From the sequence record OP599913.1: a stretch of 64,000 nt of DNA, one strand, 5' to 3'. The notes beneath the pieces were generated by a model. It worked only from the letters and a program-made list of their open reading frames with translations. It searched no databases and was not told where the DNA came from. Below, one piece after another: positions 3,541 to 55,455 of this stretch (position 1 is its first letter; each line of letters opens with the position of its first letter). The translations under genes and the position numbers were made by a program.

Positions 3541-4449
3541 TTAACCCATGTACAACTGACCGGCAGCGCCGTCCACTTGGGCTTTCTGATCGATCATCCG
3601 TTCGATGGTACCGGATGGCGACGAGGTGACAGCCGCAGAACGCTGTTTGAAGCCCGGAGGGGCAGCAATGGCATCCGGGTTGTACAGCGGAAGGAGTTTC
3701 AACATCTGACGAGCAATCTGTTTCACGGCCAGGGTGTCGAATTCCACCAAACCGGTGAACTCCATGGTGATCTGACGGATTGCGCCTTCTTCGCTCTTGT
3801 TACGCTTGATTTCAATCGGAACAGAGGTACGGGGCATCATACCAACCACCAAGGCAGCGTGAGCAATGTCCTTCATGGTGTGGGTGGGTTCGAAGTAGAT
3901 GCACGAGACCGATACTTCATCGATCAGCATGTCACCCGGATTGTCCAGGATGACAATCTTGGCGTTCAGGACTTCCGAATCCATGACCAGCCATTGTTGC
4001 CAGACCTTGAACATCTTGGTGAACACTTCACCGATGCAATCGTAACCAGTATGCGTGACTTGACCCATTGAACGGGTAGCGCCCGACGGAATGGAGAGTA
4101 CGTGACCCGTCCATTCCATTTGAGCAAACTGAACCTCAGTCATGTCACGGAGACCTTCGAACGACTGAGAACGGTTTTCAAACCACGCCTTACACAGCGA
4201 ATGCAACGCAGTGCCACCCGGCAGTCGGGAGAAGGCAGCGGGAGTCGAGAGGACAATACACCACCCCAGTTGACTGACGTGAGGTTGTGCGCTGACATAC
4301 TCGAAGACGTTACCAGCCCAACCGTACATACCCCCGAATTGGGCGTTAATAACCGGACGGTTTTGCAGGTCCAGAGCCCGTACGAAGGGATCGGACTTCG
4401 GGAGTAGGGTCGTACTGGACCGATGAGGGAAGTTCGTTTCATTAGCCAT
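3541..4449 (-). CDS. Tail tube protein (phiKZ gp30-like)
   Basis: 302-aa beta-rich protein immediately downstream of the sheath gene, with C-terminal EIKRNK..GAIRQITMEFTG. Assignment rests on synteny. Confidence 0.75.
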   Translation of the reverse strand: MANETNFPHRSSTTLLPKSDPFVRALDLQNRPVINAQFGGMYGWAGNVFEYVSAQPHVSQLGWCIVLSTPAAFSRLPGGTALHSLCKAWFENRSQSFEGLRDMTEVQFAQMEWTGHVLSIPSGATRSMGQVTHTGYDCIGEVFTKMFKVWQQWLVMDSEVLNAKIVILDNPGDMLIDEVSVSCIYFEPTHTMKDIAHAALVVGMMPRTSVPIEIKRNKSEEGAIRQITMEFTGLVEFDTLAVKQIARQMLKLLPLYNPDAIAAPPGFKQRSAAVTSSPSGTIERMIDQKAQVDGAAGQLYMG

Positions 4450-29403: not shown

Positions 29404-30843
29404 ATGGAATTACCTGAACTGACTCCGAGCCTTTCGTTGGCCATTAAACGGTTAACGGAATACAGTGAAGAAGTGCTGGATCCCCTTAAGGACTTTGTTG
29501 GCTACGCCAGTAAGCTGGATTTTTCCTTGGAGGATGATCCTCGGTTCTCGATGCCGGCCTATCCCGATTTTGAAGACTACGACTACCTGCACGATACCAG
29601 CCGTCTTAAGCAAGTCTACCTGAATGACTTCGATTTCAATCTGGAAGAAGACCGAGAAGCCCTCAGTCGGTTAACCCGGATGGAGTTTGAGGGTAATTCG
29701 TTTGATACCGTTGCGCGGTGTTTGTGTAAGGACGGCAAGGGACTCCGGGGTAACTACCTCCTGGGTACCGAACGGGTGTGTCCACGGTGTGGGAGTAAAG
29801 CAGAACTCTTCTTGGATCAAGGGGAAGACACCCGGATCTGGCTCAAATGCCCCGAAGGGGTGAAGAAGTTCGTTAACATCGGGTTCTTTACGACCTTCTT
29901 TAACAATATCAGCATAGGAAACCCGTCCCCCAAGATCAATGTACCGCGTTACTTCATTGATCCTCTGTATCGAACCAAGGTTAAGAAGCAACGGAATGGA
30001 ACCCTCATTGCCATTAACCAGATGCTCGGTGACTTGGAGATCCACCATGTCGACCTGAACACGTTCTATGATCACTGTGATCGGATCATGGAATACATTC
30101 TGGTAGGTCCAGGTGAGCGCTGGTCGAAGTACCGGGGAGGGGAAGGTGCTGAGATCCTGGAACTGTATCATCGGTATAAACACATCGCGTTCTGTAATTA
30201 CATGAAGGTACCCAGTCGGTACTGCATGGTGCTGGAACGGGTGGGTAAAGAAGTCCGGAGTTATGAGCATCAGCCTGAAACAGCGAAGCTCTATAACGCC
30301 ATTGCGGATACCATGAAGTCCAGCAATTGTTATCAGCTCACTGAAAAGGACTTGCAACGCAATGTGGACATTGTGGGTAAGAACCTGGTGGCGTTAGCCG
30401 ATCAATTCAGGAGTGTCAATAACCCCAAAGCCGTGTTTAATAAACACGGTATCAACCGTAAGCATGTGTGCGCAGGTCCGGTGCCATTAACGGGACGGTC
30501 GGTGATTACCTCTCAAACGGGTATTATTAATCACTCCGAAGTGATTATGCCGTGGAAGATGGTCGTTACCATCCTGGAACAACCCATTACGAACCACCTC
30601 TATCGGTTAGGGCATACCCCCCGGAGTGCCCGTAAGCTGATCTATAACGCGGCCTATCGGATCGTTCCAGAAATCGATGCGTTCTTACGGCGTGCGGAGG
30701 AGAGTCGTAAAGTCCTGGTTCAAATGGGGCGTAACCCCTCGATTGAGTACCTCAGTCGACGCACCAATTACCTGAGGGTGAACCGGGATCTGGAAGATGA
30801 GAGTATTAAGATCCCCATTACTTCAGTCGGTCCTTACAATGCT
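29404..30843 (+). CDS. Non-virion RNA polymerase beta'-like N-terminal subunit, exon 1
   Basis: Zn-binding CLC...CPRC, RKHVCAGPVPLTGRSVIT and QMGRNPS motifs. Ends ...GPYNA, the first half of the NADFDGD catalytic motif. Confidence 0.9.
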
Positions 30844-32263
30844 TAACAATGATTACCCTATTCCTCTACCAGGAGGAATTCGTGCAGATAGAAAGGATAT
30901 ACACAACTCCTATTGAACATCCAGAGGAAGTTGGTTTTTATAAACATCCAACATTGCCGATTTGGTTGTCTAAAGACGACGATCGGATCCTCACAGAAAC
31001 AGGTTTCGTGGAACCAAGCATAGGTGGCGAATACAAGTACTACATTCGTCAGCACCTCCATGTGTTGAAGCTAGAGACATTTCTGGAGAAGCCCAGCTCA
31101 ACTATCAAGTTGTGGGGGAATCACAGGGATGGGGACAAGCGCAATAATCACCTGGATAACTTGGAGTGGTGTACTCCGTCAATGAATTTGATCCATGCGT
31201 TTAAGACTGGTCTCAGGTCGGATAACCTTCCGGGGTTACTCACCGATCTAGAAACTGGTGAGGTCAAATCATTTACGAGTTTAAGGGAATGCGCTGCCTA
31301 CTTAGGTATCAATCCTGGTACACTCACTGTTTACATGAAATCTGACAGAAAGTATCCGCTCAAGTTTAAGTACTCTGTGCGTCTAATATCGGAAGAGCCT
31401 AGCAAACTGACTGCTGACGACATTGGTAAAGTAAGGAAGGGTGGTCCCAAACCTTGCAAGATCGTCAATAAACTCACTGGCGAAATAAAACATCTGGCCT
31501 TTGAGAAAAGCATTCAGGAACTGTTCGGTTTATCCGAGAGACGTTATCAGCGTGCTTTGAGAGAACGCGGATACGAAGACTGGATTTTCGAAGAAGTGAA
31601 GACGTATGAAGAATACGTCGAGTGTTTAAAGGATGATAAGGCGAAGACTGTAAAGTCTAACCGACATCTTTCTTTAGTCAAGGAAAAACAGTTGGCTACA
31701 GCTAAGAAGATTGTGGTTACTAACAATCTGACAGGCGAAATAACTGAATTCGACAATCTTAGTGACTTCTCAATGGAGAATGGTTTCATGATAAGCGAGA
31801 TCAACCGCGCTTTGAAAACCAAAGATTCATGGAGAGAATTCACATTTAAATATCTGGAATAGGGTAATTGTTAAAGGCTCACCAGGCACGAAAGTCCTGG
31901 ATGAGAATCTCTTTAATTGCTGGAACACCCACAAAAGTGAACCACCTTACGTAACCGTAAGGGGACGAAAGTCAGAAACAACGGTTCACCTGTCCTACGC
32001 TAACCAATAACGCTAAGGGATACTGACAAGGGGCAACCAGCAGCGAAGCCTGTTGTTATTCAACAGGAACGTTCAACGGCCATTCGATGACCCGTAATCT
32101 GATTACGGCGAGAAGTAGGGTAGCAAGCTAATGGCACCCGAAACAGGAGACATCCCCCCTCTGGTTAACAGAGCGGGTGAAGATATGGTCTGACCACCGT
32201 TTAAGAGACGGTGCAGGTGCTACAACGTACCGGGTAATGAGTTGCGACATTACTGGACAAGTG
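30844..32263 (+). mobile_element. Group I self-splicing intron (1420 nt) in nvRNAP beta'
   Basis: The 5' exon ends in U (GCT) and the intron ends in G (caagtg), so splicing restores YNA|DFDGD. Core elements: P aattgctggaa (31915), Q aaccagcag (32035), R gttcaacggcca (32071), S aagatatggtc (32180). P7 ggcca/tggtc pairs. Confidence 0.93.
30882..31862 (+). CDS. Intron-encoded HNH homing endonuclease with NUMOD1-like repeats
   Basis: NHRDGDKRNNHLDNLEWCT..N..HA motif and DLETGEVKSFTSLRECAAYLGI-type repeats. GTG start after AGGAGG; ATG 30849 is an alternative start. Confidence 0.9.
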   Translation: MQIERIYTTPIEHPEEVGFYKHPTLPIWLSKDDDRILTETGFVEPSIGGEYKYYIRQHLHVLKLETFLEKPSSTIKLWGNHRDGDKRNNHLDNLEWCTPSMNLIHAFKTGLRSDNLPGLLTDLETGEVKSFTSLRECAAYLGINPGTLTVYMKSDRKYPLKFKYSVRLISEEPSKLTADDIGKVRKGGPKPCKIVNKLTGEIKHLAFEKSIQELFGLSERRYQRALRERGYEDWIFEEVKTYEEYVECLKDDKAKTVKSNRHLSLVKEKQLATAKKIVVTNNLTGEITEFDNLSDFSMENGFMISEINRALKTKDSWREFTFKYLE

Positions 32264-32455
32264 GATTTTGATGGCGATTCCATGTATGCCATCTTCTTGA
32301 TTGACTTGGAGTCTAAAGCGAAAGCCTACGGGGGATTAGGTCATCATCAGGTATTGGATAACAACGTTCCCTTCAAGATCAGCAAGTATGCGGGACAAAC
32401 CGCTACCAACCTGATGAACTTCAATACCCTCATGCTACAGAAACCGATTGAGTAA
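32264..32455 (+). CDS. nvRNAP beta'-like N-terminal subunit, exon 2
   Basis: Begins DFDGDSMY. The spliced protein is about 543 aa. Confidence 0.9.
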   Translation, partial: DFDGDSMYAIFLIDLESKAKAYGGLGHHQVLDNNVPFKISKYAGQTATNLMNFNTLMLQKPIE

Positions 32456-38854: not shown

Positions 38855-40291
38855 ATGTCCGAAATGTTGGTGACATTGACCCGAGCCATCTTTGGCATGG
38901 GAAATAGCAACCACGATCACGTTCATCGTCATAACCAACTCAACCTGGACAGTACTGAGGTGGATGATCTCATCATGGAACAAGTCAATGGAGGTGTCAC
39001 CGCAGGTACCCTGAACCGCATTGCTGCCTCCAGCGGTAACTTGTCCCAGCGCCCTCAGGGTTACGTCTCCGTCGAAGAAGGCTTCGGTGTACGGCGGGGA
39101 ATTGGACAACTCACGTTCGTTATTGAAAGCAATTCGAACTTCCATTCGGAAATGTGTGTGGTGGGGTATCTCTTTGGAGGCACTGCGTCGGAACAAGGTA
39201 TCTCGGATGACACCATGTTCGTTCCGGTACGGACTTGGTCAACCTTGACGACCAACACCCATGACAGTCAAGGCTTCCCGATGACCAAGCGGATGATCGA
39301 CAGTTCCCACCAGTTCCTCATGGGATCGGTGGATCAGAACAAAGACCTGAAAGCCGTACGTCCGTTGGATGTTGGGAATGAAGCCTTGGGGTTTGCCGCC
39401 AGTGAAGAAGATGGTTCTGAGATGATGTATTCCGGGACGGTGGGGAGCGACCTCAAGAACAACACCTTGATGTCGAAGACCCTCAACCTCAACCCCACGC
39501 ATTATTCCCGGGAGTTGCTCAAACTGGCCACCAATGCAGGGTTCCACTCCTCCAATGGCAGTTCGTTGGAAGTGGAACTGTCCAACGGATTGATCGGCGA
39601 ATCGATTGGAGAGCTTTCTCCGCTCGAAAACCCTTTCATGCGGGCGATGATGCAATCCACCGGTCAGTACATGCTGGGTGGTTTCCAGGGATTCAGTATT
39701 GGGGAAATCTATCAGGTCTTCGATAACCTGTTGGATGTCATGAACCTCAACCTGTTGAATCCCAGTTCCTTTGCAGAAGACAACACCTTGCTCACCAGCA
39801 GTGAATATGGCTCTGCGGGTAACCATGAGGTGATTGCTACGGAACTGGCGATGATGTCGGTTCACTTGATGTTGCAGTGCGGTCTCTCCAGCCTACGGTT
39901 CTCCGCCACCAATAACCTCATGGAATATAGCACGATCATGGATGATGGTGTGGGTGTCGCTTTCGTCATCGGTGAAGCCATGTCCATGTTGGACAATGAC
40001 ATGTTCGTGGAAAACCGGGTGGAGGACTTCAAGCGTCTGATCGCCCAACACTTCTTCTCGAAATACTCGGGTCCTCATGTTCATTTGAGAACCTTGATGA
40101 ATATTGAGGTGGAGTGCTACATGTTTGGTGAGATCGTTATTACGATTGCGTTCAATGGGGAAGACAACGAGAAAACCTTCACCAACGCCACCTACTACAT
40201 TAATCATACCAGTAGCAGCATTGCCGGTAATGAAAACGGCCTGTTGGAAGCCAAGAACTTCCTGACTGGTATTCGTGAATACTTCAGCTAA
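38855..40291 (+). CDS. Putative PicA/Imp1 nuclear-import factor (phiKZ gp69-like)
   Basis: 478 aa immediately after the gp68-like gene. Assigned by size and synteny only. Confidence 0.6.
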   Translation: MSEMLVTLTRAIFGMGNSNHDHVHRHNQLNLDSTEVDDLIMEQVNGGVTAGTLNRIAASSGNLSQRPQGYVSVEEGFGVRRGIGQLTFVIESNSNFHSEMCVVGYLFGGTASEQGISDDTMFVPVRTWSTLTTNTHDSQGFPMTKRMIDSSHQFLMGSVDQNKDLKAVRPLDVGNEALGFAASEEDGSEMMYSGTVGSDLKNNTLMSKTLNLNPTHYSRELLKLATNAGFHSSNGSSLEVELSNGLIGESIGELSPLENPFMRAMMQSTGQYMLGGFQGFSIGEIYQVFDNLLDVMNLNLLNPSSFAEDNTLLTSSEYGSAGNHEVIATELAMMSVHLMLQCGLSSLRFSATNNLMEYSTIMDDGVGVAFVIGEAMSMLDNDMFVENRVEDFKRLIAQHFFSKYSGPHVHLRTLMNIEVECYMFGEIVITIAFNGEDNEKTFTNATYYINHTSSSIAGNENGLLEAKNFLTGIREYFS

Positions 40292-40305
40292 GAGGATAAC
40301 CGCTC

Positions 40306-41742
40306 ATGCACGAAACCAATGAACTGAACAAACTGTACGAAGCGATGTGTTTGTCGTGGGGGGCGCAGGTTAAGGAACAGGGACGACTCGTCTTTATGAT
40401 CGATGGGGAAGAATTCCCACTCCGTATTGATGGGATGACCCTCCACCTGCCGCTGAGCGAAGTCCTGGACGGGAACTGTGTGGATAAGGTCTTCTTCCAC
40501 CCTGCCTGTGAAAACATCGTGTCGAAAGAAACGGAAGTGTTCAAGATCATCCGGCGGATGACCTGTATGAAACTGCTGGATACCTTCCGTCGTATTCCGA
40601 TGGTGTTGTTCACCGTCGCCGGCCATAAGCCCAAGAGTACCTGGAACCAACGTATCCATGACATGCTGGAACCCCTTAAAGGTGCCAAGCGTGCGGTACG
40701 GGATGAACTCAATGCGTTGTTCAGCCGTATGCATGTGGAAGTGGAAGAGAATGGGTTGGATAACCGTTTCATTCACTTCAAGGTATCTAAGGGTGGCGGT
40801 ACCAGCAAGACCACGGGTCAACGGATCTATTACAAGACCCGCCCGGAGTTTCCGTTCTATACGGAAATCGTTCGTCGTCTGGCACGTTCAGATGGTCAAT
40901 CGGATAACCAGACCATTGAAATCAATAACCACACGGTCTCCAGAGCAGCACTTCGTCTGGCCGCCCATATCTTCCAGAACGTCCTCCCGGCGGTGAACAG
41001 TCCCAGTGACTATGAGTTTGAATCGACTTCCCCGGTGGCGTCTCGTCTAGTGTCCTACATGGGGTGCTATGCGGAAATCGCGGATCAATTGAATAAGATC
41101 CAGAATACCTTCCGATCTGATTTCGATAAAGTCGGGTTGTACCCGATTGATCTGAGCTGGACGGAACGCCTGGAAGAACTGCCAGATATCTATCGTCAAG
41201 TCCCGGTACTGGATTACAACAGCCACAACACCCATGATGAAGTCCAGCATCAAGCAGTGAGTCGGAATGACATGGGTGGTCTGCTGTCGGTTACCAGTAC
41301 CAACCAACAGGGTGTTTCTCAACATCAATCTCAACAGCAGCACGTTGCCGGAATGAACGGGGACTATGACGTATCACCTCCGCAGATGCAAGCGGGTGAC
41401 CGGTATGTCCGTACTGAGATCGATTATGTCGGTCAGCGTGTCCTCCACCATGCGGTTAACCAAACCACCAATAACCCGGTCGTCTACATCTGTAGTCGTA
41501 AAGGGAACTTCCTGCAACGCTCTGAAACCAACATGATGCTTCAGCAAATGGGTATGTTGGGTGGGATGGGTGGTATGATGGGTGGAACGATGCTGGCCAA
41601 TGGGATGGTTCAACTGCCGAACGGTATGATCGTGAATCCGCAGATGATGGGGGGTGTTTCGATGCCTACACCTACCGCCGCGCCGAGTGTATATCCGGAT
41701 GCTGGTATGGGGTTTGACCTGGGAGCCCCAGGTATCTTCTAA
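40306..41742 (+). CDS. Conserved hypothetical protein (phiKZ gp70 position) with a Gln/Met/Gly-rich low-complexity C-terminus
   Basis: 478 aa; tail QQMGMLGGMGGMMGGTMLANGMVQLPNGMIVNPQMMGG. Confidence 0.75.
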   Translation: MHETNELNKLYEAMCLSWGAQVKEQGRLVFMIDGEEFPLRIDGMTLHLPLSEVLDGNCVDKVFFHPACENIVSKETEVFKIIRRMTCMKLLDTFRRIPMVLFTVAGHKPKSTWNQRIHDMLEPLKGAKRAVRDELNALFSRMHVEVEENGLDNRFIHFKVSKGGGTSKTTGQRIYYKTRPEFPFYTEIVRRLARSDGQSDNQTIEINNHTVSRAALRLAAHIFQNVLPAVNSPSDYEFESTSPVASRLVSYMGCYAEIADQLNKIQNTFRSDFDKVGLYPIDLSWTERLEELPDIYRQVPVLDYNSHNTHDEVQHQAVSRNDMGGLLSVTSTNQQGVSQHQSQQQHVAGMNGDYDVSPPQMQAGDRYVRTEIDYVGQRVLHHAVNQTTNNPVVYICSRKGNFLQRSETNMMLQQMGMLGGMGGMMGGTMLANGMVQLPNGMIVNPQMMGGVSMPTPTAAPSVYPDAGMGFDLGAPGIF

Positions 41743-41759
41743 GCAACCATAACCTTACC

Positions 41760-41800
41760 AGTACCTAGCGGGATGTCCCGCTAGGTACTGTATTTTCTCT
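41760..41800. terminator. Terminator between convergent genes
   Basis: agtacctagcggga / tcccgctaggtact 14-bp stem. Confidence 0.75.
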
Positions 41801-41817
41801 ATTTTATTCCAGTATTT

Positions 41818-42147
41818 TTACGCTTGGGTCGTATTACTACGTGCAACGGCCTGGGTCAAATGGGCCTCGTCAATTATCTTGTAACTTTGCATGCCCGCAC
41901 AATCCATAAAGGGATCTTCAATCCCATTCAGATAGGCAGTGACCCACAGCATATGGTTTTCAACCCCTTGAACCCTCAAGAATCGATAGAAGTCATACCG
42001 ATAAGCGTACAGTTGTGCGTGAGAGACGATTGGAATCTCCTGGGTTTGACGGAGGAGTATTTCCCGTTCGGACCGCACCAAGACTTTGAACCGTTCAGTA
42101 AAGAAGAAATCACGTCCTTCACTGAAGTTAACAATAGACAGTGGCAT
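41818..42147 (-). CDS. Small protein with a LysM/T4-gp53-like baseplate motif
   Basis: YAYRYDFYRFL...LWVTAYLNGIEDP resembles the W-x-I-x-x-x-N-x-I-x-DP motif of gp53/gpX-type proteins. AAGGA SD. Confidence 0.5.
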   Translation of the reverse strand: MPLSIVNFSEGRDFFFTERFKVLVRSEREILLRQTQEIPIVSHAQLYAYRYDFYRFLRVQGVENHMLWVTAYLNGIEDPFMDCAGMQSYKIIDEAHLTQAVARSNTTQA

Positions 42148-42186
42148 GGAGAAGATCCTTATCGATGCAGCTAACCATTTTTGAAC

Positions 42187-42203
42187 CTATATTATTTCTG
42201 TGA
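42187..42203 (+). promoter_or_regulatory. Phage promoter motif upstream of tnpB
   Basis: (AAC)CTATATTATTTCTGTGA, the same family as 1203, 18754, 19818, 37220 and 52793. Confidence 0.5.
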
Positions 42204-42225
42204 CCCAACATAAGGAATTATCCCA

Positions 42226-43368
42226 ATGGAATACTTAACGACCCAACGAAGTCGATTGTATCCCAACCTGGATACTCGTCTGGTATTAAACAAAACCATA
42301 GGGTGTTCACGTTTCATATGGAACGCTCTACTGGGTAATCATAAGGAAGAATACGGTCTTTGGGTAGAGGATCCAGAAACTCATCCTAAACCGAGTTGTT
42401 CTTTAAGTTCCTTTAATCAAAAGCTGAATGAGCTTAAAGTTGAATACCCCTGGTTAAATGAGGTCAGTTCTGTTGCTTTACAACAAACAGTTCTTCATTT
42501 AACCAAGGCTTTTAGTGAGTTCTTCCAGGGTATTCATGGTTATCCAAAATTTAAATCTAAACGAGATCCCGGTGGATTTAACCTCAGTAGTGCAGCGGGA
42601 ACTTTAGCCAAGGACGGCAAGATTCGAATCCCCAAGATAAAGGGATACACCACCTGTCGACCTAAGCTCCCGTTGGATCAGGAAATTAGGAACTACAGCA
42701 TTGTCAAAGACCGAGTTGGGAATTACTTTGTCAATTGCTTAGTAACTAAACCTTGTCTACCGAATACGGCTAAAGGTCAAGGACTGGTGGGGGTTGATCT
42801 GGGGATTAAATCCTTAGCGGTGGCGAAGCGGTCTACAGGTGAAATCTTTACCTTGGAGAATCCTCGAACCTACATGAAGTACCACCGTAGACGTGTACGA
42901 CTTCAACGGCGATTAGCCAAGAAACAGAAAGGGAGTCAAAACCGTAATAAAGCTAGAATTAAACTGGCCAAACTAGAACGTAAGGTCGGCAATATTCGCA
43001 AGAACACCCTGGATACCTTCACCTCTAAACTGATTAGCGAAAACCAAGTAATCAGTATTGAGGATTTGAATGTTAAAGGGATGCTGAAAAACAGCCGGTT
43101 GGCTAAGCATATCCAAGACTGTGGATTTAGCACCCTCCGGAGGATGTTGGAACACAAGGCTAAACGGTATGAATCACCGGTTATTATTAGCCTGGTCCAT
43201 CGATTTTACCCCAGCACCCAGTGTTGTTCAGCGTGTGGTATTAAACGTGAGATCAAACTGACCCTTAATGACCGGGAATGGACCTGCGCTGAATGCGGGA
43301 CCTCTCACGACAGAGACATCAATGCTGCAACGAATATCCTGTATGAAGGACTTCGGTTAGTGGTCTGA
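42226..43368 (+). CDS. tnpB: TnpB RNA-guided endonuclease (IS200/IS605/IS607 superfamily), no tnpA nearby
   Basis: N-terminal RLYPN...IGCSRFIWN HTH, RuvC-I VGVDLGIK, RuvC-II ISIEDLNVKGM, Zn finger CCSAC...CAEC and RuvC-III HDRDINAATNI. All three catalytic acidic residues are present. Confidence 0.95.
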   Translation: MEYLTTQRSRLYPNLDTRLVLNKTIGCSRFIWNALLGNHKEEYGLWVEDPETHPKPSCSLSSFNQKLNELKVEYPWLNEVSSVALQQTVLHLTKAFSEFFQGIHGYPKFKSKRDPGGFNLSSAAGTLAKDGKIRIPKIKGYTTCRPKLPLDQEIRNYSIVKDRVGNYFVNCLVTKPCLPNTAKGQGLVGVDLGIKSLAVAKRSTGEIFTLENPRTYMKYHRRRVRLQRRLAKKQKGSQNRNKARIKLAKLERKVGNIRKNTLDTFTSKLISENQVISIEDLNVKGMLKNSRLAKHIQDCGFSTLRRMLEHKAKRYESPVIISLVHRFYPSTQCCSACGIKREIKLTLNDREWTCAECGTSHDRDINAATNILYEGLRLVV

Positions 43369-43515
43369 TAGAAAATTTACTCTTTGGAGTAACTACCGAA
43401 GCCTACTCGGGATGTTAAGCCTGTGGAGCATCAGTGCGGTTAAGCTGAGCAATGAAGCAGGAAGTTTGAGGTTAAAACATTGGGATAAAGACAGTTTTAA
43501 CTCTTTATTGAAAAG
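43369..43515 (+). ncRNA. Putative TnpB omegaRNA scaffold / right-end region
   Basis: Contains AAGCCTGTGGAG and GAAGCAGGAAG, typical of tnpB 3' ends, then a gttaaaac/gttttaac hairpin. The exact boundary was not determined. Confidence 0.6.
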
Positions 43516-43542
43516 ACTGCTGTTGACTGTAATGGAGCCGTT

Positions 43543-45849
43543 ATGAGTAAAGAAAAATTGAATCAGGACCTGAAAGGTGTAAGTAGTGAGATCCGTGCCG
43601 CATTGGGTACAGAGGATCCGGTTCTTACCCCTGACAGTGCAGCGGGTCAATTCCTCCAGGAAGTCCGTTACAAGTATCCCTGTGGGGAGAATCAAATCCA
43701 TCCTGCGTTAGTGGGTGTCAGCAGTAACCTGATTCTCTTCCCGCACGAAGCCTCCGCGGGTCGTCTCTATATGGCGGGTAACATGATCCCTAAATCCGTG
43801 CCGACCGAAGGAGCGGGTGAACGGATGATGGTAACCGGGTACGAATTTGAGGAACATTACGGTGGAACGGCTCGTAAGGTCGAAGCCCCTGCGAATATGC
43901 TGGTGGAAGAGATCTTCTTCGTTCAGAGTCTGGTTCCGGGTAAGGATACGGATGACTGGAATTCGATTTACGTGGTCTTTAAGAACGACGAACAGAACGC
44001 CTACGACCTTCTGGAGCTACCTCGGTATAATACCCATAACCACTACGTTGGGTTCGAATATAAATACGATAAAGAGAAACTCCGTAAGCTCCGTAAAGGT
44101 GCCACTTTCGCTAAAGGGACCGTCTTCGCTAAGAGTCCCCGTATCAGTGAGAATGGGGAATGGTGTTTTGCAATGCCGACCTTGGTAGCCGCCTATTCGG
44201 ACCAAAGGACTGAAGAGGATGGCGTGCTTATCACCCGTTCCTATGCGGAACGTTCGGCCTGTATGTTCAAGCACGAGTTCAGCTATGAATGGAATGAGGA
44301 TGAATGGATTCCTCTGATGCTGTACGGAACGGACGAGAACCCCCAACCGCTTCCTGAGTCGGGTGATAACATTCGTGAGGATGGGATCGTCATGGGCTTC
44401 CGTCGCCGCATCAAAGAGAACGCGCTGGTTTCCCTGACCAAGAAGTCCCTACGAGAACCGGATCTTGTGTACGACAAGTTGTTTTACGCACCTGTGGATG
44501 CGGTTGTGATGTCAGTCACTGTTCGGTCGGATCGGATGAAGAACCGGTCCAATAACCGGGGTACGGATTACATCGAACAACACCACAATGCCATGCTGGA
44601 CCGCTATGAGAAACGCCAGAATGAAATGTGGAACAATGTGATCCGGTGGTACGAAGGGAAGATCGCTGCCAACCGCGGGGAAGACATCCCCATTACCTTT
44701 AACCTCGATACATTCATTCGGAACGCGTATGGTAACTATACCCGCAATGGGTTGGGTCGTATTAACCCGTTGGCCCGAGTGGAACGGTGGGATAAGCTGA
44801 AAGATTGGAACGTGACCATCGAACTGAAGGAACGGGTTAAAGGTCGTGTTAAATTCAAGTACGCGGGTTTGAACGGTGACAAAGGGGTGTGTGTACGAGT
44901 CATTGAAGACGACGAAGCCCCAACCTATCCGGACGGGACTCGGGCGGAGTTCATTAAAGATAACGTACCAGCGTTCCGTCGCCAGATCTTTTCGTTGCTT
45001 ATGGAACTGAGTATCAACTATGTGAACATGAACGTTCAACGGGAAGTCAGACACCTACGGCTACAAGGGGATTATGAAGGCGCTTTCCAGGCGTTGATGA
45101 CGTTCTATGAAACCGGTTTCCCTGAATTCAGTGAATTGGTTGCTCATGCGTTGGTTACGGAGGAGGAGAAACGTGAGCACGTCGACGATGTCTGTCGCCG
45201 GAAGATTTCCGTGCATGTGGTCAGTAACACGAAGTTGTATGGCGTGAACCTGATCAACGCCCTGCGTCGTCAATACCCGTATAAGCCGCAGAAAGCCATT
45301 ATCGTGAACGCACTGGGGGAACGGGTGGAAACCGAGAACCCTATCCTTATCAGCTGTCAGGACATTATGCTTCTGGATAAGTTTGGTACGGACATGAGTG
45401 CGCAGAGTATGCCGAAGGCTAACCTCTTTGGTATGCCAGCGAAGATGAACGAAGGCAGTAAATACGCCACCCCCATGAAAGACAGTAATAACAAGAATAC
45501 CGGTGAAACCGAAGGCCGGTTGCAAGTCAGTCACGCGGGCGGGCAGGAAATGATCAAGCAACTGGCTCTGGCGTATTCCCCCGAGAACCAGAAGAAAGCC
45601 TCCCAACGGGTTATTCGTGCGGATGATCCGTTTGAGATTCCTCGGTTGATTAAACCGGAGGAGTATTTGGGGAATCGGGCGTTGAAAATGGCGGTGGGAA
45701 TGTTGTCGGATTCGGGTTATCGGCTGCGGGCTGAACTGCCCAGTGATCGTCGGGAATATCCAACCTTTAACATGGATGAAATCCCAGGGTTAGATGACGA
45801 GACCTTGAAGCAGCTTCAGTCATCCGAGAAACCCACTCAAGAACCTTAA
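43543..45849 (+). CDS. Non-virion RNA polymerase beta-like C-terminal subunit (phiKZ gp71-73-like), uninterrupted
   Basis: SAGRLYMAGN, TEEDGVLITRSY and KFKYAGLNGDKGV (bacterial GDKMAGRHGNKG) motifs, plus NKNTGETEGR. Confidence 0.88.
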   Translation: MSKEKLNQDLKGVSSEIRAALGTEDPVLTPDSAAGQFLQEVRYKYPCGENQIHPALVGVSSNLILFPHEASAGRLYMAGNMIPKSVPTEGAGERMMVTGYEFEEHYGGTARKVEAPANMLVEEIFFVQSLVPGKDTDDWNSIYVVFKNDEQNAYDLLELPRYNTHNHYVGFEYKYDKEKLRKLRKGATFAKGTVFAKSPRISENGEWCFAMPTLVAAYSDQRTEEDGVLITRSYAERSACMFKHEFSYEWNEDEWIPLMLYGTDENPQPLPESGDNIREDGIVMGFRRRIKENALVSLTKKSLREPDLVYDKLFYAPVDAVVMSVTVRSDRMKNRSNNRGTDYIEQHHNAMLDRYEKRQNEMWNNVIRWYEGKIAANRGEDIPITFNLDTFIRNAYGNYTRNGLGRINPLARVERWDKLKDWNVTIELKERVKGRVKFKYAGLNGDKGVCVRVIEDDEAPTYPDGTRAEFIKDNVPAFRRQIFSLLMELSINYVNMNVQREVRHLRLQGDYEGAFQALMTFYETGFPEFSELVAHALVTEEEKREHVDDVCRRKISVHVVSNTKLYGVNLINALRRQYPYKPQKAIIVNALGERVETENPILISCQDIMLLDKFGTDMSAQSMPKANLFGMPAKMNEGSKYATPMKDSNNKNTGETEGRLQVSHAGGQEMIKQLALAYSPENQKKASQRVIRADDPFEIPRLIKPEEYLGNRALKMAVGMLSDSGYRLRAELPSDRREYPTFNMDEIPGLDDETLKQLQSSEKPTQEP

Positions 45850-45888
45850 CCCCATGATAGACTCACGGTATGGAGAGGAATGTAACTC

Positions 45889-48800
45889 ATGGTAATGAAG
45901 ATCAAACTCCGTGAATGGGCTAATTTACCAGAAGAAACTGTTCTCCGTTGGTTAAATACCCGCCGGTGGGTGGAGGTTACGGATGACCTGGACCAGGTCG
46001 CTTTAACGGATACCTACGCCCTGATCATTACCTGGCATGGAATGATCATCCACCGACATTATAACGATGTTCCCTATTCCATTAAGGAGATGGTACCCAG
46101 TAATAAGGTGGAAGGGGCTGAAGACACCGTCTATAACGATGGAACCAACGCGACGCCTATTAACCAGTTCTTAAAGGTCATTCTTCCTACGATTATTGAC
46201 CCGGTGGAAGTGGACGGGATTAAACGGCTTATTCATATCTGGCAGAATAAGCTGAATAACCTGCTGGTGGTGATGAGTGAACGTTACGTTATTTCAGCCA
46301 CCGCTGAATCCGTAGCGGAGTTCATGGAAGATGAAGGGATCTCTGGAATACGGGACCGTGTCCTGAGCAAGGAGATTTCAATTGATGAGGGTGAGCGGGA
46401 GTTTGCGGATTATGTCCGGACCTCTCATTCCATTGCCAACAACACCCTCACCCTGCTGTCGCGTACGGGCGGGGTGGCCATTAACCAGGCGTATCAGAAG
46501 ACGATCATCCGGGGTAAGGTCTTTGACCTGAACAACTCGATCATGCCGAATGCGATTACGGTTCCGTATGCGCATGGGATTACCAACCTGGCTGATATGC
46601 TGGGTGAACGGAATGCAGCGGGTAAAGCCGGAGTTTTGTCTTCAAAGATAAAAATCCCTGGTGGATGGAAGACCATGGGTAACATCCGGGTGGGTGATGA
46701 AGTCGTTACACCCGATGGAGGTACCGCTAAGGTGCTGGCAGTTCACCCACAAGGTGTAACCAAGGTTGTACGGGTGCACTTCAAAGACGGTCGATATACT
46801 GACGTTAGTCCAGATCACCTGTGGAAGGTTAGACGTCATCATTGGTGCAACGATAAAGCCATGGCTAAACTCACTCGGGAGGAAGTGGAAGAACGTGTAT
46901 GGCGAGTCATCACCACCAATGAGTTGAAAGACTATATTGGTCTGTCAACTAAGGTATACGTCCAACTGATTGAACCTGAAAGAAATGCCGATAAACCCTT
47001 CAAAATTCACCCGTATGTGCTCGGTGTCTTGTTGGGGGATGGATGCATTAGTCAAAAGGCTGTGGATATCACCAAACCTTATCAACAGCTATTCGATAAG
47101 GTCCAATCGCTATTGCCAGAACATTTGGAGTGTGTTTGGCGGAGCAATGGTGATAAAGAACCTAAAACGTTCGGGATCCGTTTTAAAGATCGTCGGTCCG
47201 AACAGCACATCAACTGGCATATCCGTGATGGCCTGAAGGAACTGGGCTTGTATGGAATGCGGTCGTGGGGAAAAGTCATTCCCGAAGAATATCTTCACGG
47301 ATCGGCTAAACAACGTTTGGAGCTCCTCCAAGGACTGTTGGACACAGACGGAACTGTGGACAAACACAAATCGGTTAGCTTTAGCTCTTCGTCTAAGTTA
47401 CTCTCCCTCGGAGTGCAATACTTGGTCAGAAGCCTAGGGGGGATGGCACGTCTCCAAGAACGTACTCCCCACTACACCCACAATGGAGAAAAAAGGGAAG
47501 GTCGTACGGACTATCGGGTTTATATCCGATACCCTCGACCAGAAGAACTCTTCACCCTAGACCACAAACGGGAACGTGCGGTCTCGCACCAGCATACGGA
47601 AACCCTGAGACTGCAAGTAACTCATATTGAAGAACGTCCTGATGAGGAGACACAATGCATTACGATCGATCATCCTGATCATCTGTACATTACAGACGAC
47701 TTCATTGTCACCCACAACAGCTTGACCAATAACGGCAAGGCCCTGAAATCATCGGAATGGTTCCACCGGAAGGTGCATATCCTGTCCGCTGTGGTAGCGG
47801 ATATCGATCATTTCACGGACTGTGGAACGACCACTACAGTGCCGATCCGAATTCCCAATATGCAAGCGGCAATGGCACTGTTGGGTAAATTCAGGGTAAC
47901 CGATACAGGAGAATTAGAACTCATTGATCAAACCACGGTGTGGTCAATTAAGCCAGGGGAGTGGGTTAATATTCGTAGTGTGGCCTTCTGTAATCACTAC
48001 AATAGTGCTTCACCCTGCCGGGTATGCTACGGGATGATGGCGAGCTCTATCCCGTATAACGTGATGATGAAGAAAGGGGCTGATGTCGGGATGTGGTGTA
48101 CCACCTCGATCTGTAACCCCATCGGTCAGGGAATGCTCTCCACCAAGCATTTCATTCGGAATGCAACGACCCGTAAGTTCGTTCCTGCGACTAAGGATAA
48201 GAACGTTATCTATTCCAATGGTGACGATATTTTCCTGACTAAGGAGCTCTGCGCACCAGGCACTGAATTGGTGCTCAAAGCCGATATTGTGAACATCCTC
48301 TCGGATATCCGTTCCTTGGATGTTCTGGACAACTTGAGCCTGGATAAACTCCCGTACTTCTCTGAAGTCACATTCCGCTATGAAGTCGAAGACATCATGA
48401 TGGGGGGTAAGACCCTCCAGCAGCACGCGGCCTGTACCTCGGTGTCGTCTCGGAATGCCCGGTTCTCGTTGGAGTTCCTGAACTATCTCCTGAGTAAAGG
48501 TTGGGCGAACGAAGGTAAGAAACATATTACCGTTGATTTGAGTGAATGGAATACGCTCAGTCCTATCTTCACACTGCCGTATGTTCGTGAAGACTTGGAC
48601 ATGCACAGGGCTCGGGTAGAGAACTTCATCACGTTCAATAAACGCAATAACGCCTGGAGACAGCAGATCGTTACACCCCGTCTCTTTGGTGAAGTCTTAG
48701 CGGAATACTGGGGGTTGATCAACCAGGAAACGAAAGGAATTAACATCATCCATCCTGAGGTCTTACTCTATTCCACGTTGTGTCGGGATCCCATGCGCGG

Positions 48801-48993
48801 GGATTATTCCCTGGCGAATGGTAATGGACCTAAGTATTTCGTGAACTTCCAGGAGTGTATCAAAGGCAGAGGGGCGGGTATGCTAATGATCTACGAGAAC
48901 CAGCAAAATGTGCTGAGCGATCCTAAGACATTCCGTGTGGTAAACCGTCAGGGGAGTCCGCTGGAGTGCTTCTTTAGCTTAGCGGTGAGTTGA
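45889..48993 (+). CDS. Non-virion RNA polymerase beta'-like C-terminal subunit (phiKZ gp74-like), intein-containing (about 670 aa after splicing)
   Basis: Bridge-helix equivalent AAGK|SLTNNGKALKSSEWFHRK, then DCGT, RSVAFC...CRVCYG and IGQGMLSTKH. Confidence 0.9.
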   Translation: MVMKIKLREWANLPEETVLRWLNTRRWVEVTDDLDQVALTDTYALIITWHGMIIHRHYNDVPYSIKEMVPSNKVEGAEDTVYNDGTNATPINQFLKVILPTIIDPVEVDGIKRLIHIWQNKLNNLLVVMSERYVISATAESVAEFMEDEGISGIRDRVLSKEISIDEGEREFADYVRTSHSIANNTLTLLSRTGGVAINQAYQKTIIRGKVFDLNNSIMPNAITVPYAHGITNLADMLGERNAAGKAGVLSSKIKIPGGWKTMGNIRVGDEVVTPDGGTAKVLAVHPQGVTKVVRVHFKDGRYTDVSPDHLWKVRRHHWCNDKAMAKLTREEVEERVWRVITTNELKDYIGLSTKVYVQLIEPERNADKPFKIHPYVLGVLLGDGCISQKAVDITKPYQQLFDKVQSLLPEHLECVWRSNGDKEPKTFGIRFKDRRSEQHINWHIRDGLKELGLYGMRSWGKVIPEEYLHGSAKQRLELLQGLLDTDGTVDKHKSVSFSSSSKLLSLGVQYLVRSLGGMARLQERTPHYTHNGEKREGRTDYRVYIRYPRPEELFTLDHKRERAVSHQHTETLRLQVTHIEERPDEETQCITIDHPDHLYITDDFIVTHNSLTNNGKALKSSEWFHRKVHILSAVVADIDHFTDCGTTTTVPIRIPNMQAAMALLGKFRVTDTGELELIDQTTVWSIKPGEWVNIRSVAFCNHYNSASPCRVCYGMMASSIPYNVMMKKGADVGMWCTTSICNPIGQGMLSTKHFIRNATTRKFVPATKDKNVIYSNGDDIFLTKELCAPGTELVLKADIVNILSDIRSLDVLDNLSLDKLPYFSEVTFRYEVEDIMMGGKTLQQHAACTSVSSRNARFSLEFLNYLLSKGWANEGKKHITVDLSEWNTLSPIFTLPYVREDLDMHRARVENFITFNKRNNAWRQQIVTPRLFGEVLAEYWGLINQETKGINIIHPEVLLYSTLCRDPMRGDYSLANGNGPKYFVNFQECIKGRGAGMLMIYENQQNVLSDPKTFRVVNRQGSPLECFFSLAVS
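46627..47718 (+). mobile_element. Class-3-type intein (364 aa) with intact LAGLIDADG endonuclease
   Basis: Starts AGVLSSKIK. Block B DHLW, motifs LGVLLGDG and LQGLLDTDG, block F TQCITI, ends FIVTHN|S. Confidence 0.92.
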
Positions 48994-52740: not shown

Positions 52741-52831
52741 ATGCCACTTCAAGATCCAGGAGATTGGTCTTGTATTCTAAGAAAAGACAAACCTAAATCA
52801 TTAAAGTGAATAACCGCCAATCGGTGTTTCG

Positions 52832-52894
52832 ATGTCTATCTCCGGCTCACAACCCTTCCACAAAGGCCACTCATTCAAACGCGTAGCTTATTAA
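52832..52894 (+). CDS. Possible 20-aa micropeptide (MSISGSQPFHKGHSFKRVAY) or small RNA
   Basis: Lies between the promoter motif at 52793 and a hairpin plus T tract at about 52900-52945. The SD is weak. Confidence 0.3.
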   Translation: MSISGSQPFHKGHSFKRVAY

Positions 52895-53109
52895 TCCTAC
52901 CTCCCGCCCTTAACCGGGTGGTGGGGTTAGTATTCACCTTTATTTTAGTTAAAATCCTTATTATCTCTAAAACGCTCTGTAATGCGTTCTAAGAGGTTTT
53001 AATAAAACCCTAGGGTAGTGTTACCTTACCTCTGTTTAACGCTTATACGCGTTAATAGACCCTTTAAAGAGGGTATTACCCTATTACCTTTCCATAAGGA
53101 ACCTTTCTA

Positions 53110-54087
53110 ATGACGATTAACACCCTTACCGACCTCTTTACCCCCGAGGAACTGAGCACCTACCAACAACATCCCTTCCCGTACAACCTCCCCCTCCTTA
53201 AAACAGCTCTGGATAAGAAACTTCAAGAAGATCCTACTTACGAAGTCTTTATTCCTCTCTACTACCGTAAGCAAGATAAACGAGTCAAGGATGACAACGC
53301 CCTTAAGGAAATCAAACTCCATTACCTCCTGATTAGCAATAAAGGTAAGATCCTCTCCTGCAATAACCCTGAAAAGGAATACCGAGAGATTCCTACCAGT
53401 GTACACCCAGGTGGTTACACCAATGCCTTTATTGCTGTACAGGGCAAGAATAACAGTGTAGCCCTTCATAGAGCCTTAGGGTGTACCTTCATTCCCGTAT
53501 CGGAAGAACTCCTTGAACAGGGGTACCACCCTAAGGACTTGGAAGTCAATCACATTGATGGAGATAAACAGAATTGGGATCTCGATAACCTTGAGTGGTG
53601 TACCACTAAGCAAAACATCAATCACGCTGTTGAAACGGGACTTATGGCATCAGGTAAGGAACATCAGGATACCAAGCCTGTTAAGGGGAAAGTGATCAGA
53701 GGGAACCATATTGGTTACGAGTTTGTACTCTTTGGAGGAAGTAACTTAGAAGAGTACGGGTTTGACCAAGCAGCGGTCAGTAATGCGGCTAATGGGAATC
53801 TGAAGTCGCATGGGAACTGTGAGTGGTGCTTCGCTACGGAGGAGGACATCCAGAACCTTCCCCACACTATCCCTGAGGAGATCACCAAGGATCTGAAGGA
53901 TGTTTCCCCTTGGATCAAGTACCGGTTTATTGGAACGAATCTAAAGACCGGTGAGACGATCGTTATTCACAGCCCAGCGGAGGCTAAGGAGAAAGGGTTT
54001 AACATCAATGGAATCAGGAACAACCTTTGTGGGATTAGTCGTTCCAGTGGAGGGTATTCCTGGACTCAAGAACTCTTAACACCATAA
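53110..54087 (+). CDS. Free-standing HNH homing endonuclease
   Basis: VALHRALGCTF...EVNHIDGDKQNWDLDNLEWCT..NINHA motif and C-terminal NUMOD-like repeats. AAGGA SD. Confidence 0.92.
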   Translation: MTINTLTDLFTPEELSTYQQHPFPYNLPLLKTALDKKLQEDPTYEVFIPLYYRKQDKRVKDDNALKEIKLHYLLISNKGKILSCNNPEKEYREIPTSVHPGGYTNAFIAVQGKNNSVALHRALGCTFIPVSEELLEQGYHPKDLEVNHIDGDKQNWDLDNLEWCTTKQNINHAVETGLMASGKEHQDTKPVKGKVIRGNHIGYEFVLFGGSNLEEYGFDQAAVSNAANGNLKSHGNCEWCFATEEDIQNLPHTIPEEITKDLKDVSPWIKYRFIGTNLKTGETIVIHSPAEAKEKGFNINGIRNNLCGISRSSGGYSWTQELLTP

Positions 54088-54101
54088 CCGAAATACCCCC
54101 C

Positions 54102-54133
54102 CCCCTTCCTCTCCGATTAGGGAGAGGAAGGGG
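54102..54133. terminator. Terminator between convergent genes
   Basis: ccccttcctctcc / ggagaggaagggg stem. Confidence 0.7.
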
Positions 54134-54153
54134 TTTAGGGTGTTATTTTCAGT

Positions 54154-55455
54154 TTATTTAAGCGCTGTTTCCAAATCCAACAGGTTCGTTTTACTACCTG
54201 CAGTGTGATGGGCCTTCATGCGCTGCAATAAAAATGCAGTAGGAATCAAGACCACTTCGGAGCTGAGACGATGCCCTAAAGCCCCTAGACCTTCCCCACA
54301 ACAGGTCTTACAATAGTAACCGTCCTTTAGGGTACAGAACTGAGGGACTCTGGCCTGCACGGGCTTATTAACGTAACGATCCAGGTTTTCAGCGGTGAGC
54401 TGTACCAGGACTTTCCCATCCTGGATCCACGTTCCTACCCAGTACCCTTTATTGGTTGGCAGGATCGTAACAGTTTCTGTCACCGGGGTACCGCAATCCA
54501 CGATATCCTCGTTAACGGCCGTGCGGCCTATTAGACGCAACGTTTCCTTAACCCTAGCCCCACCTTCACCGGTGGACATAGAACGGCTGTAAGAGCCCTC
54601 TACGGCCGTATTAATGTAGTCCGCCAAGAAGTTCGGATCCCAGCCCTCTGCCAGGGAGTTAGGGAGTAGTACCCAGCCGTCTCCTGAAGCATTGGGTTCA
54701 ATACCGAAGGAAATGAACATCCGTTTACGCGAGTTGTCAATAAACTTCTTTGCAATAAAGAACTTGCGGCTAGGACCAGACATCACGATCTTCATGTCCA
54801 GCGCCACACACTGATCAATAATCGAGGTGGCAACAACCGGATCATTGAGTTCGTCTTTATGCTCTTTAAAGAGACGATCCCTGAGTTTAATGACTTCAGG
54901 ACTCACCGTTAGGGCGTCTACACCACCCGGTTTAATGAAGTGAGACCCTAACCCTTCCAGGAACTGGCAGTTATGGGAGAACTTCAAACACTGGTCTACA
55001 CTGGCTTTCCCTTCAGGTACCGCTTCCCCCGGTGGGGGATTATCCACCATGAGAGTACTCAAGATCTTCAAGATAACGGGTTTAGTGAACTCCCGGTTAA
55101 GGTAGGGTTGGGTCTTCCCGAAGCATTCCCAGAAGAGAATAACGTTGAAGAGTAAGAGTCCAAAGGTAGTCGTGACCGCTTTACCTTGCAACACGGGATG
55201 GAAGTCTCCCGGGAGTTCCAGGATTTCATCCATGTAGAACAGGGGTTCATTCACCTCCCCATTCACGGTATGGGTAGAACCCTCTACCACGACATTGAAC
55301 CGATTATCTCCCACAAAGACAGCATAGGGGTATTTCTTGAACTGTCCAGAGGAGTCTTCGTCTTCAAACTGGATCGTGATAATCGATTGAATAGCCGCCT
55401 TTTCGTTATAGGCTCGGTTATTCAGGAAGAGTTTAAGGTAGTCGAGTTTAGTCAT
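54154..55455 (-). CDS. Virion RNA polymerase beta'-like middle subunit (phiKZ gp80-like)
   Basis: Bridge-helix-like EGSYSRSMSTGEGGARVKE, then DCGT and ARVPQFC...YCKTCCG Zn site. Confidence 0.85.
   Translation of the reverse strand: MTKLDYLKLFLNNRAYNEKAAIQSIITIQFEDEDSSGQFKKYPYAVFVGDNRFNVVVEGSTHTVNGEVNEPLFYMDEILELPGDFHPVLQGKAVTTTFGLLLFNVILFWECFGKTQPYLNREFTKPVILKILSTLMVDNPPPGEAVPEGKASVDQCLKFSHNCQFLEGLGSHFIKPGGVDALTVSPEVIKLRDRLFKEHKDELNDPVVATSIIDQCVALDMKIVMSGPSRKFFIAKKFIDNSRKRMFISFGIEPNASGDGWVLLPNSLAEGWDPNFLADYINTAVEGSYSRSMSTGEGGARVKETLRLIGRTAVNEDIVDCGTPVTETVTILPTNKGYWVGTWIQDGKVLVQLTAENLDRYVNKPVQARVPQFCTLKDGYYCKTCCGEGLGALGHRLSSEVVLIPTAFLLQRMKAHHTAGSKTNLLDLETALK

Follow-up and report, generated by a model that had tools for sequence, protein, structure and literature searches.

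A tnpB gene and an adjoining predicted omegaRNA, carried without a TnpA transposase by a Pseudomonas jumbo phage, may act as a stand-alone homing endonuclease gene, guided by RNA, of jumbo phages that encode chimallin, a reading in which we place middling confidence. The cassette lies in a stretch of 64,000 nucleotides (nt) of sequence record OP599913.1, here called the window, directly upstream of a gene for a beta-like subunit of the non-virion RNA polymerase (nvRNAP). TnpB is the ancestor of Cas12, and its known natural role is the retention of a transposon after excision by TnpA. Homing is the best-supported mechanism for the cassette studied here, and the comparative evidence for it consists of its distribution among close relatives, its divergence relative to the flanks, and the correspondence between a candidate guide and the empty alleles.

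Over positions 40000-47000 the window shows 100% identity with Pseudomonas phage IR-QUMS-PaBa1-GHS-2021 (OP599913.1) and 98.4% identity with phage EL. The window encodes a homologue of the nuclear-shell protein chimallin (27304-29316), together with a PhuZ-type tubulin and nvRNAP subunits; IR-QUMS-PaBa1 is therefore an Elvirus (EL-like), that is, a nucleus-forming jumbo phage. The features of the element are the following.

42199..43501, plus strand: carrier-specific stretch of 1303 nt, which replaces 20-22 nt of the empty alleles
42205..43484, plus strand: mobile unit shared with a copy at a second locus (contig L097); left limit uncertain, 42205-42212
42226..43368, plus strand: tnpB, an open reading frame (ORF) of 380 amino acids (aa) with 0 stops and 0 frameshifts
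43264..43463, plus strand: predicted omegaRNA scaffold of seven helices, overlapping the 3' end of tnpB (RNAalifold and pair counts, nine relatives)
43464..43484, plus strand: terminal segment of the unit, in which 43467-43478 is a direct copy of the native target
43485..43503, plus strand: inverted copy of the 19-nt native site, with 43485-43500 as the best candidate guide

Distribution and relative age of the element

The site is occupied in five cases, namely the window phage, EL, phiRU and the metagenomic contigs L109 and L111, and it is empty in 11 Elvirus genomes or contigs, nine of which were examined at the nucleotide level, HHBS47_1 and GXNNA8 being assigned to the empty class by a two-piece match of the same kind. 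An exact-protein look-up supplied further alleles, and scans of IMG/VR and of the JGI metagenomes for additional alleles returned EL only or nothing. The alignment with tnpB-less relatives that the initial annotation had proposed was carried out with MIZ-Pa99 (filed as Straboviridae although it is an Elvirus), HHBS8_1, GXNNE2 and six further empty contigs, and it fixed the junctions of the carrier-specific stretch. The 20-22-nt site of the empty alleles is hypervariable and the intergenic DNA on both of its sides is nearly invariant. A second locus is also occupied: a copy 99.6% identical to that of the window lies downstream of a chaperonin gene in the 214-kb Elvirus contig L097, at a place that is empty in all nine GenBank Elvirus genomes.

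The element is younger than the DNA that surrounds it. In all carrier pairs its divergence is 0.08-0.46%, against 1.3-2.8% for the flanks (Fisher 6e-10 to 4e-3), so that it is 4-30 times less diverged than either flank. Differences resume about 190 nt to its left and about 100 nt to its right, and the low-divergence tract of about 1.6 kb is centred on the element. The synonymous divergence (dS) among carriers is 0-0.012 for tnpB, 0.06-0.15 for the neighbouring 478-aa gene and 0.06-0.09 for the nvRNAP gene. Moreover, the nearest relatives of the window's flanks are empty genomes (0.56-1.0% on the left, 0.73-1.0% on the right), the flanks of the carrier EL differing from those of the window by 2.7% on the left and 1.6% on the right. 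A young element whose distribution disagrees with the phylogeny of its flanks points to recent entry into diverged genomes at the same site, and the same two results rule out the decaying insertion sequence (IS) passenger that had earlier been offered as the alternative. Presence and absence at one site among close relatives, in an element younger than its flanks, is the pattern of a homing gene, as far as the compared genomes can tell.

An intact TnpB and its predicted omegaRNA

The TnpB ORF matches the Pfam families HTH_OrfB_IS605, OrfB_IS605 (1.3e-22) and Cas12f1-like_TNB (1.5e-20), as well as PHROG 506 'transposase' (E 2.7e-114). Its best match among solved structures is ISDra2 TnpB (8bf8, 8exa and 8h1j; E 6e-51), with which it aligns over its full length, and D191 (V-D-L-G), E279 (I-E-D-L) and D364 (R-D-I-N) fall on the ISDra2 catalytic positions. 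This RuvC triad and the zinc-finger cysteines C334, C337, C354 and C357 are invariant in an alignment of 26 close members of the clade. The ORF, its domains, this alignment and the invariant residues all agree with the initial annotation, which had described a full-length, catalytically intact TnpB with its zinc finger. For pairs of clade members the ratio of nonsynonymous to synonymous divergence (dN/dS) of tnpB is 0.08-0.21, which indicates purifying selection, and the gene is therefore not decaying.

At the start of the gene, the 27 nt before the initiation codon resemble codons 4-15 of the ORF (42199-42271), with one direct repeat, GACCCAAC, at 42202 and again at 42240, and another, TATCCCAA, at 42219 and again at 42259. 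The region looks like a partial duplication of the 5' end of tnpB.

The clade conserves the 3' end of tnpB and the following 95 nt. Over 43264-43461, RNAalifold places seven helices in nine relatives, in which 95% of the cells are paired, against 33-55% with slid partners; double-sided changes occur in 13 pairs, against at most 5 in slid controls, and 0 of 500 shuffles equal the observed score. By this covariation the predicted RNA is the omegaRNA expected of a TnpB system. Its outer, k-turn-type stem pairs 43420-43424 with 43457-43461. The strings that had been singled out as omegaRNA-like were located at 43417-43428 and 43454-43464, where they form the outer stem of a weak match (43420-43463) to the Rfam model RAGATH-18, which at 25.2 bits is below the gathering score of 44.9. 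RAGATH-18 is the core of IS607 TnpB guide RNAs (PMC11061315). Relative to this model, the inner 46 positions are replaced by 19 nt and the 64-nt 3' motif is missing. TnpBs of other phages at about 40% identity have the same closing letters followed by a 25-30-nt hairpin and AGTTCAC, whereas the jumbo-phage clade has only 16-21 nt in the place of hairpin and AGTTCAC. No solo copies of the omegaRNA were found in phage records.

Candidate guide and target

In known TnpB systems the guide consists of the roughly 16 nt next to the scaffold unit. In the window the inverted copy of the native site starts exactly at the end of the shared unit, and 43485-43503 corresponds without mismatch to the reverse complement of this site in the empty alleles L108, L112 and L113; similarly, the variant present in EL, phiRU, L109 and L111 is the exact inverse of the variant of GXNNE2 and L114. 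With the start that we infer, the candidate guide 43485-43500 of the window type matches three of the nine examined empty alleles at 16/16 positions, and the EL-type guide matches two others at 16/16; MIZ-Pa99 and HHBS8_1 show 2-5 mismatches. All the 16/16 target sites have one common 5' heptamer, from which the sequence 5' of the carrier's own copy of the 16-mer differs.

The unit itself repeats, in direct orientation, the initial 12 nt of the native site at 43467-43478, and this copy agrees 12/12 with MIZ-Pa99 at the equivalent position. The alternative guide 43467-43482, which includes it, matches MIZ-Pa99 only, and over 12 nt only. The second-locus copy in L097 carries the same 13 nt of the target at the RNA polymerase (RNAP) locus and is therefore descended from a copy that resided there. 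It had been supposed that a guide at the right end targets the insertion-free allele. The DNA past the element does derive from the empty-allele site and might direct cleavage of several empty alleles; the candidate guide is better placed at 43485-43500 (alternatively 43467-43482) than in 43500-43545, where it had been sought. A comparable correspondence exists in BUCTxx100, where the 16-mer that follows the element agrees at 16/16 with the empty alleles of both Miami and KPN8.

The search of the phage genome for further guide matches, also proposed earlier, was run on the window and on EL and gave no second site: none in the window for the 16-mers 43480-43495 and 43464-43479, and none in the EL genome within 2 mismatches for these two and the EL-form post-unit 16-mer. 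Exact matches of the former two in IMG/VR (47 and 38, respectively) were judged to be at chance level. The 16 nt after GGAA were also considered as a fixed, element-borne guide; this candidate was rejected, the Miami-type empty sites at two loci being dissimilar and the canonical relatives holding scaffold at that position.

Ends of the element and missing transposase

The limits of the mobile unit were set by comparing the window with L097, L098 and L099; the window copy and that of L097 have sequence in common from some 14-21 nt ahead of the ATG up to window position 43484. The right end so defined is 18 nt past GGAAGTT, the same offset at which the target duplication starts in L097 and L092. 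A right end at 43458, with the flank beginning at AGGAA, had come from a first hand alignment and was rejected, since AGGAA and the following GTT are conserved throughout the clade.

No Pfam family of Y1 or serine recombinases is matched by any of the 53 ORFs of the window, and in the whole RefSeq annotation of EL the only transposase named is gp37, which is tnpB itself, host genomes lying outside this search for a TnpA partner. Each carrier genome has one copy of the element. The absence of tnpA reported in the initial annotation is thus borne out, and neither a tnpA nor multiple copies, which would have spoken for an ordinary recent insertion, came to light in the window ORFs, the EL annotation or the copy counts. 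As a comparator, TnpA was looked for next to the canonical relatives in L031 and L039, and none was found there. A left-end hairpin is missing, as had been noted, the junction and the ATG being separated by only 27 nt with no inverted repeat, and the canonical right-end hairpin is missing as well.

No target duplication is recognisable for the window's own copy. Checked against empty alleles, BUCTxx100 has a clean 9-bp target duplication and L097 one of 7 bp, the phiKp_32 junction has a 2-bp overlap and the Miami junction replaces 18-21 nt; further clade copies have unverified flanking repeats of 7-11 bp that start right at the unit end. The right end is always 15-18 nt past GGAAnTT, and the left end is found from 3 to 152 nt before the ATG. 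Judged on these alignments, this junction pattern fits neither IS200/IS605 nor IS607. At L092 (BUCTxx100), positions 4000-4053, there is a 55-nt left end with a perfect 14-bp hairpin, not present in the window's copy, which could be a remnant of a left-end hairpin or a terminator insulating tnpB.

The TnpB clade of jumbo phages

The relatives that form the clade are 47-61% identical to the window's TnpB and stand apart from the bulk of TnpBs, which are at most 45% identical; the best match in 185,579 species genomes is 41% identical, and tnpB matches occur in 422 phage records. All clade members with readable context are in phages or phage-like contigs, and a chimallin homologue is encoded in all six Miami-like carriers. 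Miami-like phages are 96-98% identical to one another and hold their copies at different loci; the clade is therefore mobile. L199 is a distant phage, its syntenic core proteins being only 31-46% identical to those of the window, and yet the equivalent locus is taken, behind the same motif, by a TnpB of the Miami-type sub-lineage; this TnpB has 49% identity with that of the window and as much as 70% with Miami-type copies. By these comparisons the window element is no one-off capture but a member of a TnpB lineage that lacks the transposase and has been found only in chimallin-encoding jumbo phages or phage-like contigs.

One clade member, P0027, on a 252,837-nt contig of a Miami-size phage, is truncated to 254 aa (58% identical over 66% of the query). 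In Klebsiella phage Miami a sub-threshold group I intron match (L090, 947-1266; 42.9 bits, cut-off 50) is found about 3 kb upstream of tnpB, where no gene is annotated.

Promoter motif and neighbouring genes

The following features flank the element.

41818..42147, minus strand: small upstream gene, the left neighbour of the insertion; 109 aa, PHROG 3455 (E 6.8e-21)
42178..42196, plus strand: phage promoter-type 19-mer in the phage flank, putatively driving tnpB first; 20.1 bits by weight matrix
43543..45849, plus strand: nvRNAP beta-like subunit gene, the right neighbour; 768 aa, homologue of PHIKZ071 (7ogp_C, E 2.8e-39), PHROG 3295

Nine nearly identical 19-mers, labelled 'putative phage promoter' in the EL record, supplied the weight matrix, which has no more than 14 hits in the 211-kb EL genome; among these the site of the 42178-42196 type ranks 12. 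The core pattern occurs six times in the window, against 1.24 expected. A phage-type motif does precede tnpB, as the initial annotation had stated, with a spacing of 29 nt between 19-mer and ATG instead of 23. The idea that the gene was captured behind a phage promoter is not upheld in that form, the motif being phage flank that all empty alleles keep before the nvRNAP gene. It follows that the insertion placed tnpB and its RNA between the nvRNAP gene and the promoter of that gene. The second-locus copy in L097 is also directly behind an annotated promoter, and the clade copies in L198, L199, L007 and L100 are likewise directly behind the promoter motif.

The PHROG 3455 and 7ogp_C matches confirm the described position between a small minus-strand gene and an nvRNAP beta gene. 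The small gene has syntenic homologues in L005 and L199. Its region (41818-42174) is subject to an annotation conflict: EL, MIZ-Pa99 and HHBS8_1 call a plus-strand ORF, and the minus-strand 109-aa gene is supported by the GXNNE2 annotation and the PHROG match. The gene two upstream of tnpB, earlier labelled as a putative PicA import factor, has no PDB or Pfam match and its PHROGs carry no functional annotation, so that the label is not confirmed. In the 5' untranslated region (UTR) of the nvRNAP gene a small stem-loop is present at 43502-43519 and in all empty alleles (GTCTTT ATTGA AAAGAC in the empty form), one pair shorter in carriers; its loop supplies the constant 5' heptamer beside the candidate target on the minus strand.

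Selfish nucleases at RNA polymerase genes

No fewer than five elements with selfish nucleases lie within or next to the RNAP genes of Elvirus phages. A group I intron (RF00028, 53.8 bits) is found at 31859-32211, with an HNH_3/NUMOD1 endonuclease ORF (30849-31862) directly before it, and this ORF follows one of 480 aa annotated in EL as RNA polymerase beta subunit (window region 29404-32455). Such a layout of intron and HNH gene at an RNAP gene is reminiscent of PhiPA3 gp210. A second nvRNAP beta-like gene (45889-48993) contains a LAGLIDADG intein at residues ~464-537, its PHROG match spanning an insert of about 380 residues; the intein is polymorphic, because the product is 670 aa long in the empty-allele contig L114 and 658 aa in L199. 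Several records label this intein-bearing gene as terminase or helicase. The sole stretch of the window without an EL counterpart, 52801-54200, holds a free-standing HNH_3 endonuclease gene (53110-54087) that adjoins another RNAP beta gene (54154-55455, minus strand). In EL itself (NC_007623.1, 193364-199961), gp185, annotated as HNH endonuclease, lies between the RNAP beta genes gp184 and gp186.

Mechanism and alternative explanations

If the cassette homes, a transcript made by the phage RNA polymerase would cover tnpB, the scaffold and, from the neighbouring DNA, about 16 nt (most likely 43485-43500), and the resulting ribonucleoprotein would cut alleles that lack the element in co-infecting relatives. 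The break would then be mended by recombination with the carrier, which would copy the cassette in and leave short co-conversion tracts. Carrier DNA would be spared because its matching sequence has a different 5' neighbour, and damage to the RNAP locus of a competitor would be a by-product. The initial annotation had suggested homing or competition between phages; the empty alleles, the young element and the mismatch with the flanks argue for the former, and the latter stays a conjecture. Several points weigh against homing. The start of the candidate guide was taken from the point at which two copies diverge, and a start at 43480 would put seed mismatches in every empty allele. The match by itself is weak evidence, because a flank-derived guide fits empty alleles in any insertion; at the second locus, the post-element 16-mer matches one empty type only, at 15/16. 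No common target-adjacent motif (TAM) was seen among the 5' neighbours of putative targets at different loci, the inverted copy at 43485-43503 has no explained origin, and low divergence can also be obtained by ordinary recombination with hitch-hiking.

General phage recombination would be sufficient if the cassette were an ordinary selfish passenger, a tnpB-only IS derivative inserted once and shuffled between genomes, its nuclease and guide being irrelevant. Mosaic recombination is evident among Elvirus phages, the insertion sites define no TAM, and tnpB-only elements are common in phages, as the 422 records attest. We regard this as unlikely, since purifying selection and RNA covariation call for a function of advantage to the element, the tract of low divergence has the element at its centre and extends over only about 1.6 kb, a different sub-lineage sits at the same locus in the distant phage L199, and the target site is hypervariable in empty alleles. 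TnpB could instead be kept mainly for cutting the nvRNAP promoter and 5' UTR region of co-infecting relatives and lowering their yield, gene copying being secondary. The position of the target at an essential nvRNAP gene and the other selfish nucleases at RNAP genes of the same phage would agree with such a function, and PhiPA3 gp210 offers a precedent, lowering the yield of PhiKZ via PhiKZ gp178 (PMC11620839). Escape would be cheap, however, with a candidate cut site in a freely varying non-coding spacer, and copies of the same clade lie beside many unrelated small genes; a weapon as the principal role is thus very unlikely. The position between promoter and RNAP gene, together with a guide-like sequence derived from the promoter region, would also suit a domesticated RNA-guided regulator, which like TldR would bind DNA at the nvRNAP promoter region. 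This explanation is disfavoured to the point of being scarcely credible, because the RuvC residues are all invariant in the clade, unlike those of TldR, and the element is dispensable, being absent in eleven Elvirus genomes.

Another possibility concerns the origin of new insertions: staggered cuts by TnpB, with no transposase, might set the right end of the unit and also open the insertion sites, which would account for homing and for the new loci alike. The unit stops, in every relative, 15-18 nt past GGAAnTT, about one guide length, with left ends scattered over 3-152 nt; the flanking duplications are of no fixed length (2, 7 and 9 bp in verified cases, 7-11 bp in unverified ones); the second-locus copy holds 13 nt of the RNAP-locus target; and the inverted copy of the target (43485-43503) has the look of a scar left by break repair. 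On the other hand, the stretch after GGAA is scaffold in canonical relatives, so the 16-18 nt may be a shortened right end, a source of free element copies is not known, and an enzyme of host or phage could act in trans; self-mobilisation of this kind seems to us quite unlikely. A wider proposal, tentative and rather doubtful, is that a TnpB lineage restricted to nucleus-forming jumbo phages has given up the transposase and moves by its own RNA-guided cuts, with units ending one guide length past the scaffold and duplications of variable length; it would cluster behind the 19-nt promoter, and the nvRNAP promoter would have been colonised independently in distant phages.

Relation to known systems and significance

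The element resembles ISDra2-type TnpB and the IS200/IS605 family in its domain architecture, RuvC triad and zinc finger, and in a predicted omegaRNA that shares sequence with the 3' end of the gene and runs on into the DNA next to it. It differs from IS200/IS605 in having neither a Y1 TnpA nor a left-end hairpin, and in the reduction of the right-end hairpin and AGTTCAC to 18-21 nt. Moreover, IS200/IS605 elements insert without target duplication, whereas two relatives of the window element have verified duplications of 7 and 9 bp. With IS607 (ISFba1; PMC11061315) it shares an outer stem and closing letters that match the ends of the RAGATH-18 model; unlike IS607, however, its RNA overlaps the ORF, the 64-nt 3' motif and a serine recombinase are absent, and its TnpB is closer to that of ISDra2 (6e-51) than to 8iaz (2e-34).

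Homing genes of the T4 Seg/Mob type and PhiPA3 gp210 are similar in being intergenic nuclease genes beside a conserved essential gene; presence and absence among close relatives and short co-converted flanks are further points in common, and there is a precedent in which the RNAP gene of a nucleus-forming phage is the target. The difference is that specificity in the window element would come from an RNA guide, and that its nuclease is of the RuvC type and not HNH or GIY-YIG. TldR proteins are likewise phage-borne, tnpA-less and encoded next to a guide RNA, but they lack the catalytic residues and have a fixed guide against host genes, whereas here the triad is invariant and the guide region comes from the phage's own locus. 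The closest parallel in proposed logic is the TnpB-dependent, TnpA-independent spread of IS605 among plasmids, termed 'non-restorative transposon homing' (review PMC13565253), in which an empty orthologous site is cut and the element is copied from the occupied allele. That case is experimental and involves a canonical IS; the present one concerns natural variation in lytic jumbo phages, in an element that has lost the canonical ends.

Sequences of carriers and of matching empty alleles are publicly available already. Beyond what the initial annotation had envisaged, the comparison brings out a transposase-less TnpB lineage, so far found only in jumbo phages, whose ends are non-canonical and which favours phage promoters. 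If homing is true, a TnpB that spreads alone between virus genomes, without TnpA, would represent a second lifestyle for this nuclease, that of a programmable homing endonuclease gene; to date this category is theoretical, with a plasmid experiment in its support. The present example would add an RNA-guided member to the selfish nucleases, such as the intein, the intron-borne HNH and the free-standing HNH, that crowd the RNAP genes of nucleus-forming phages, loci which appear to be a preferred battleground of co-infecting relatives.

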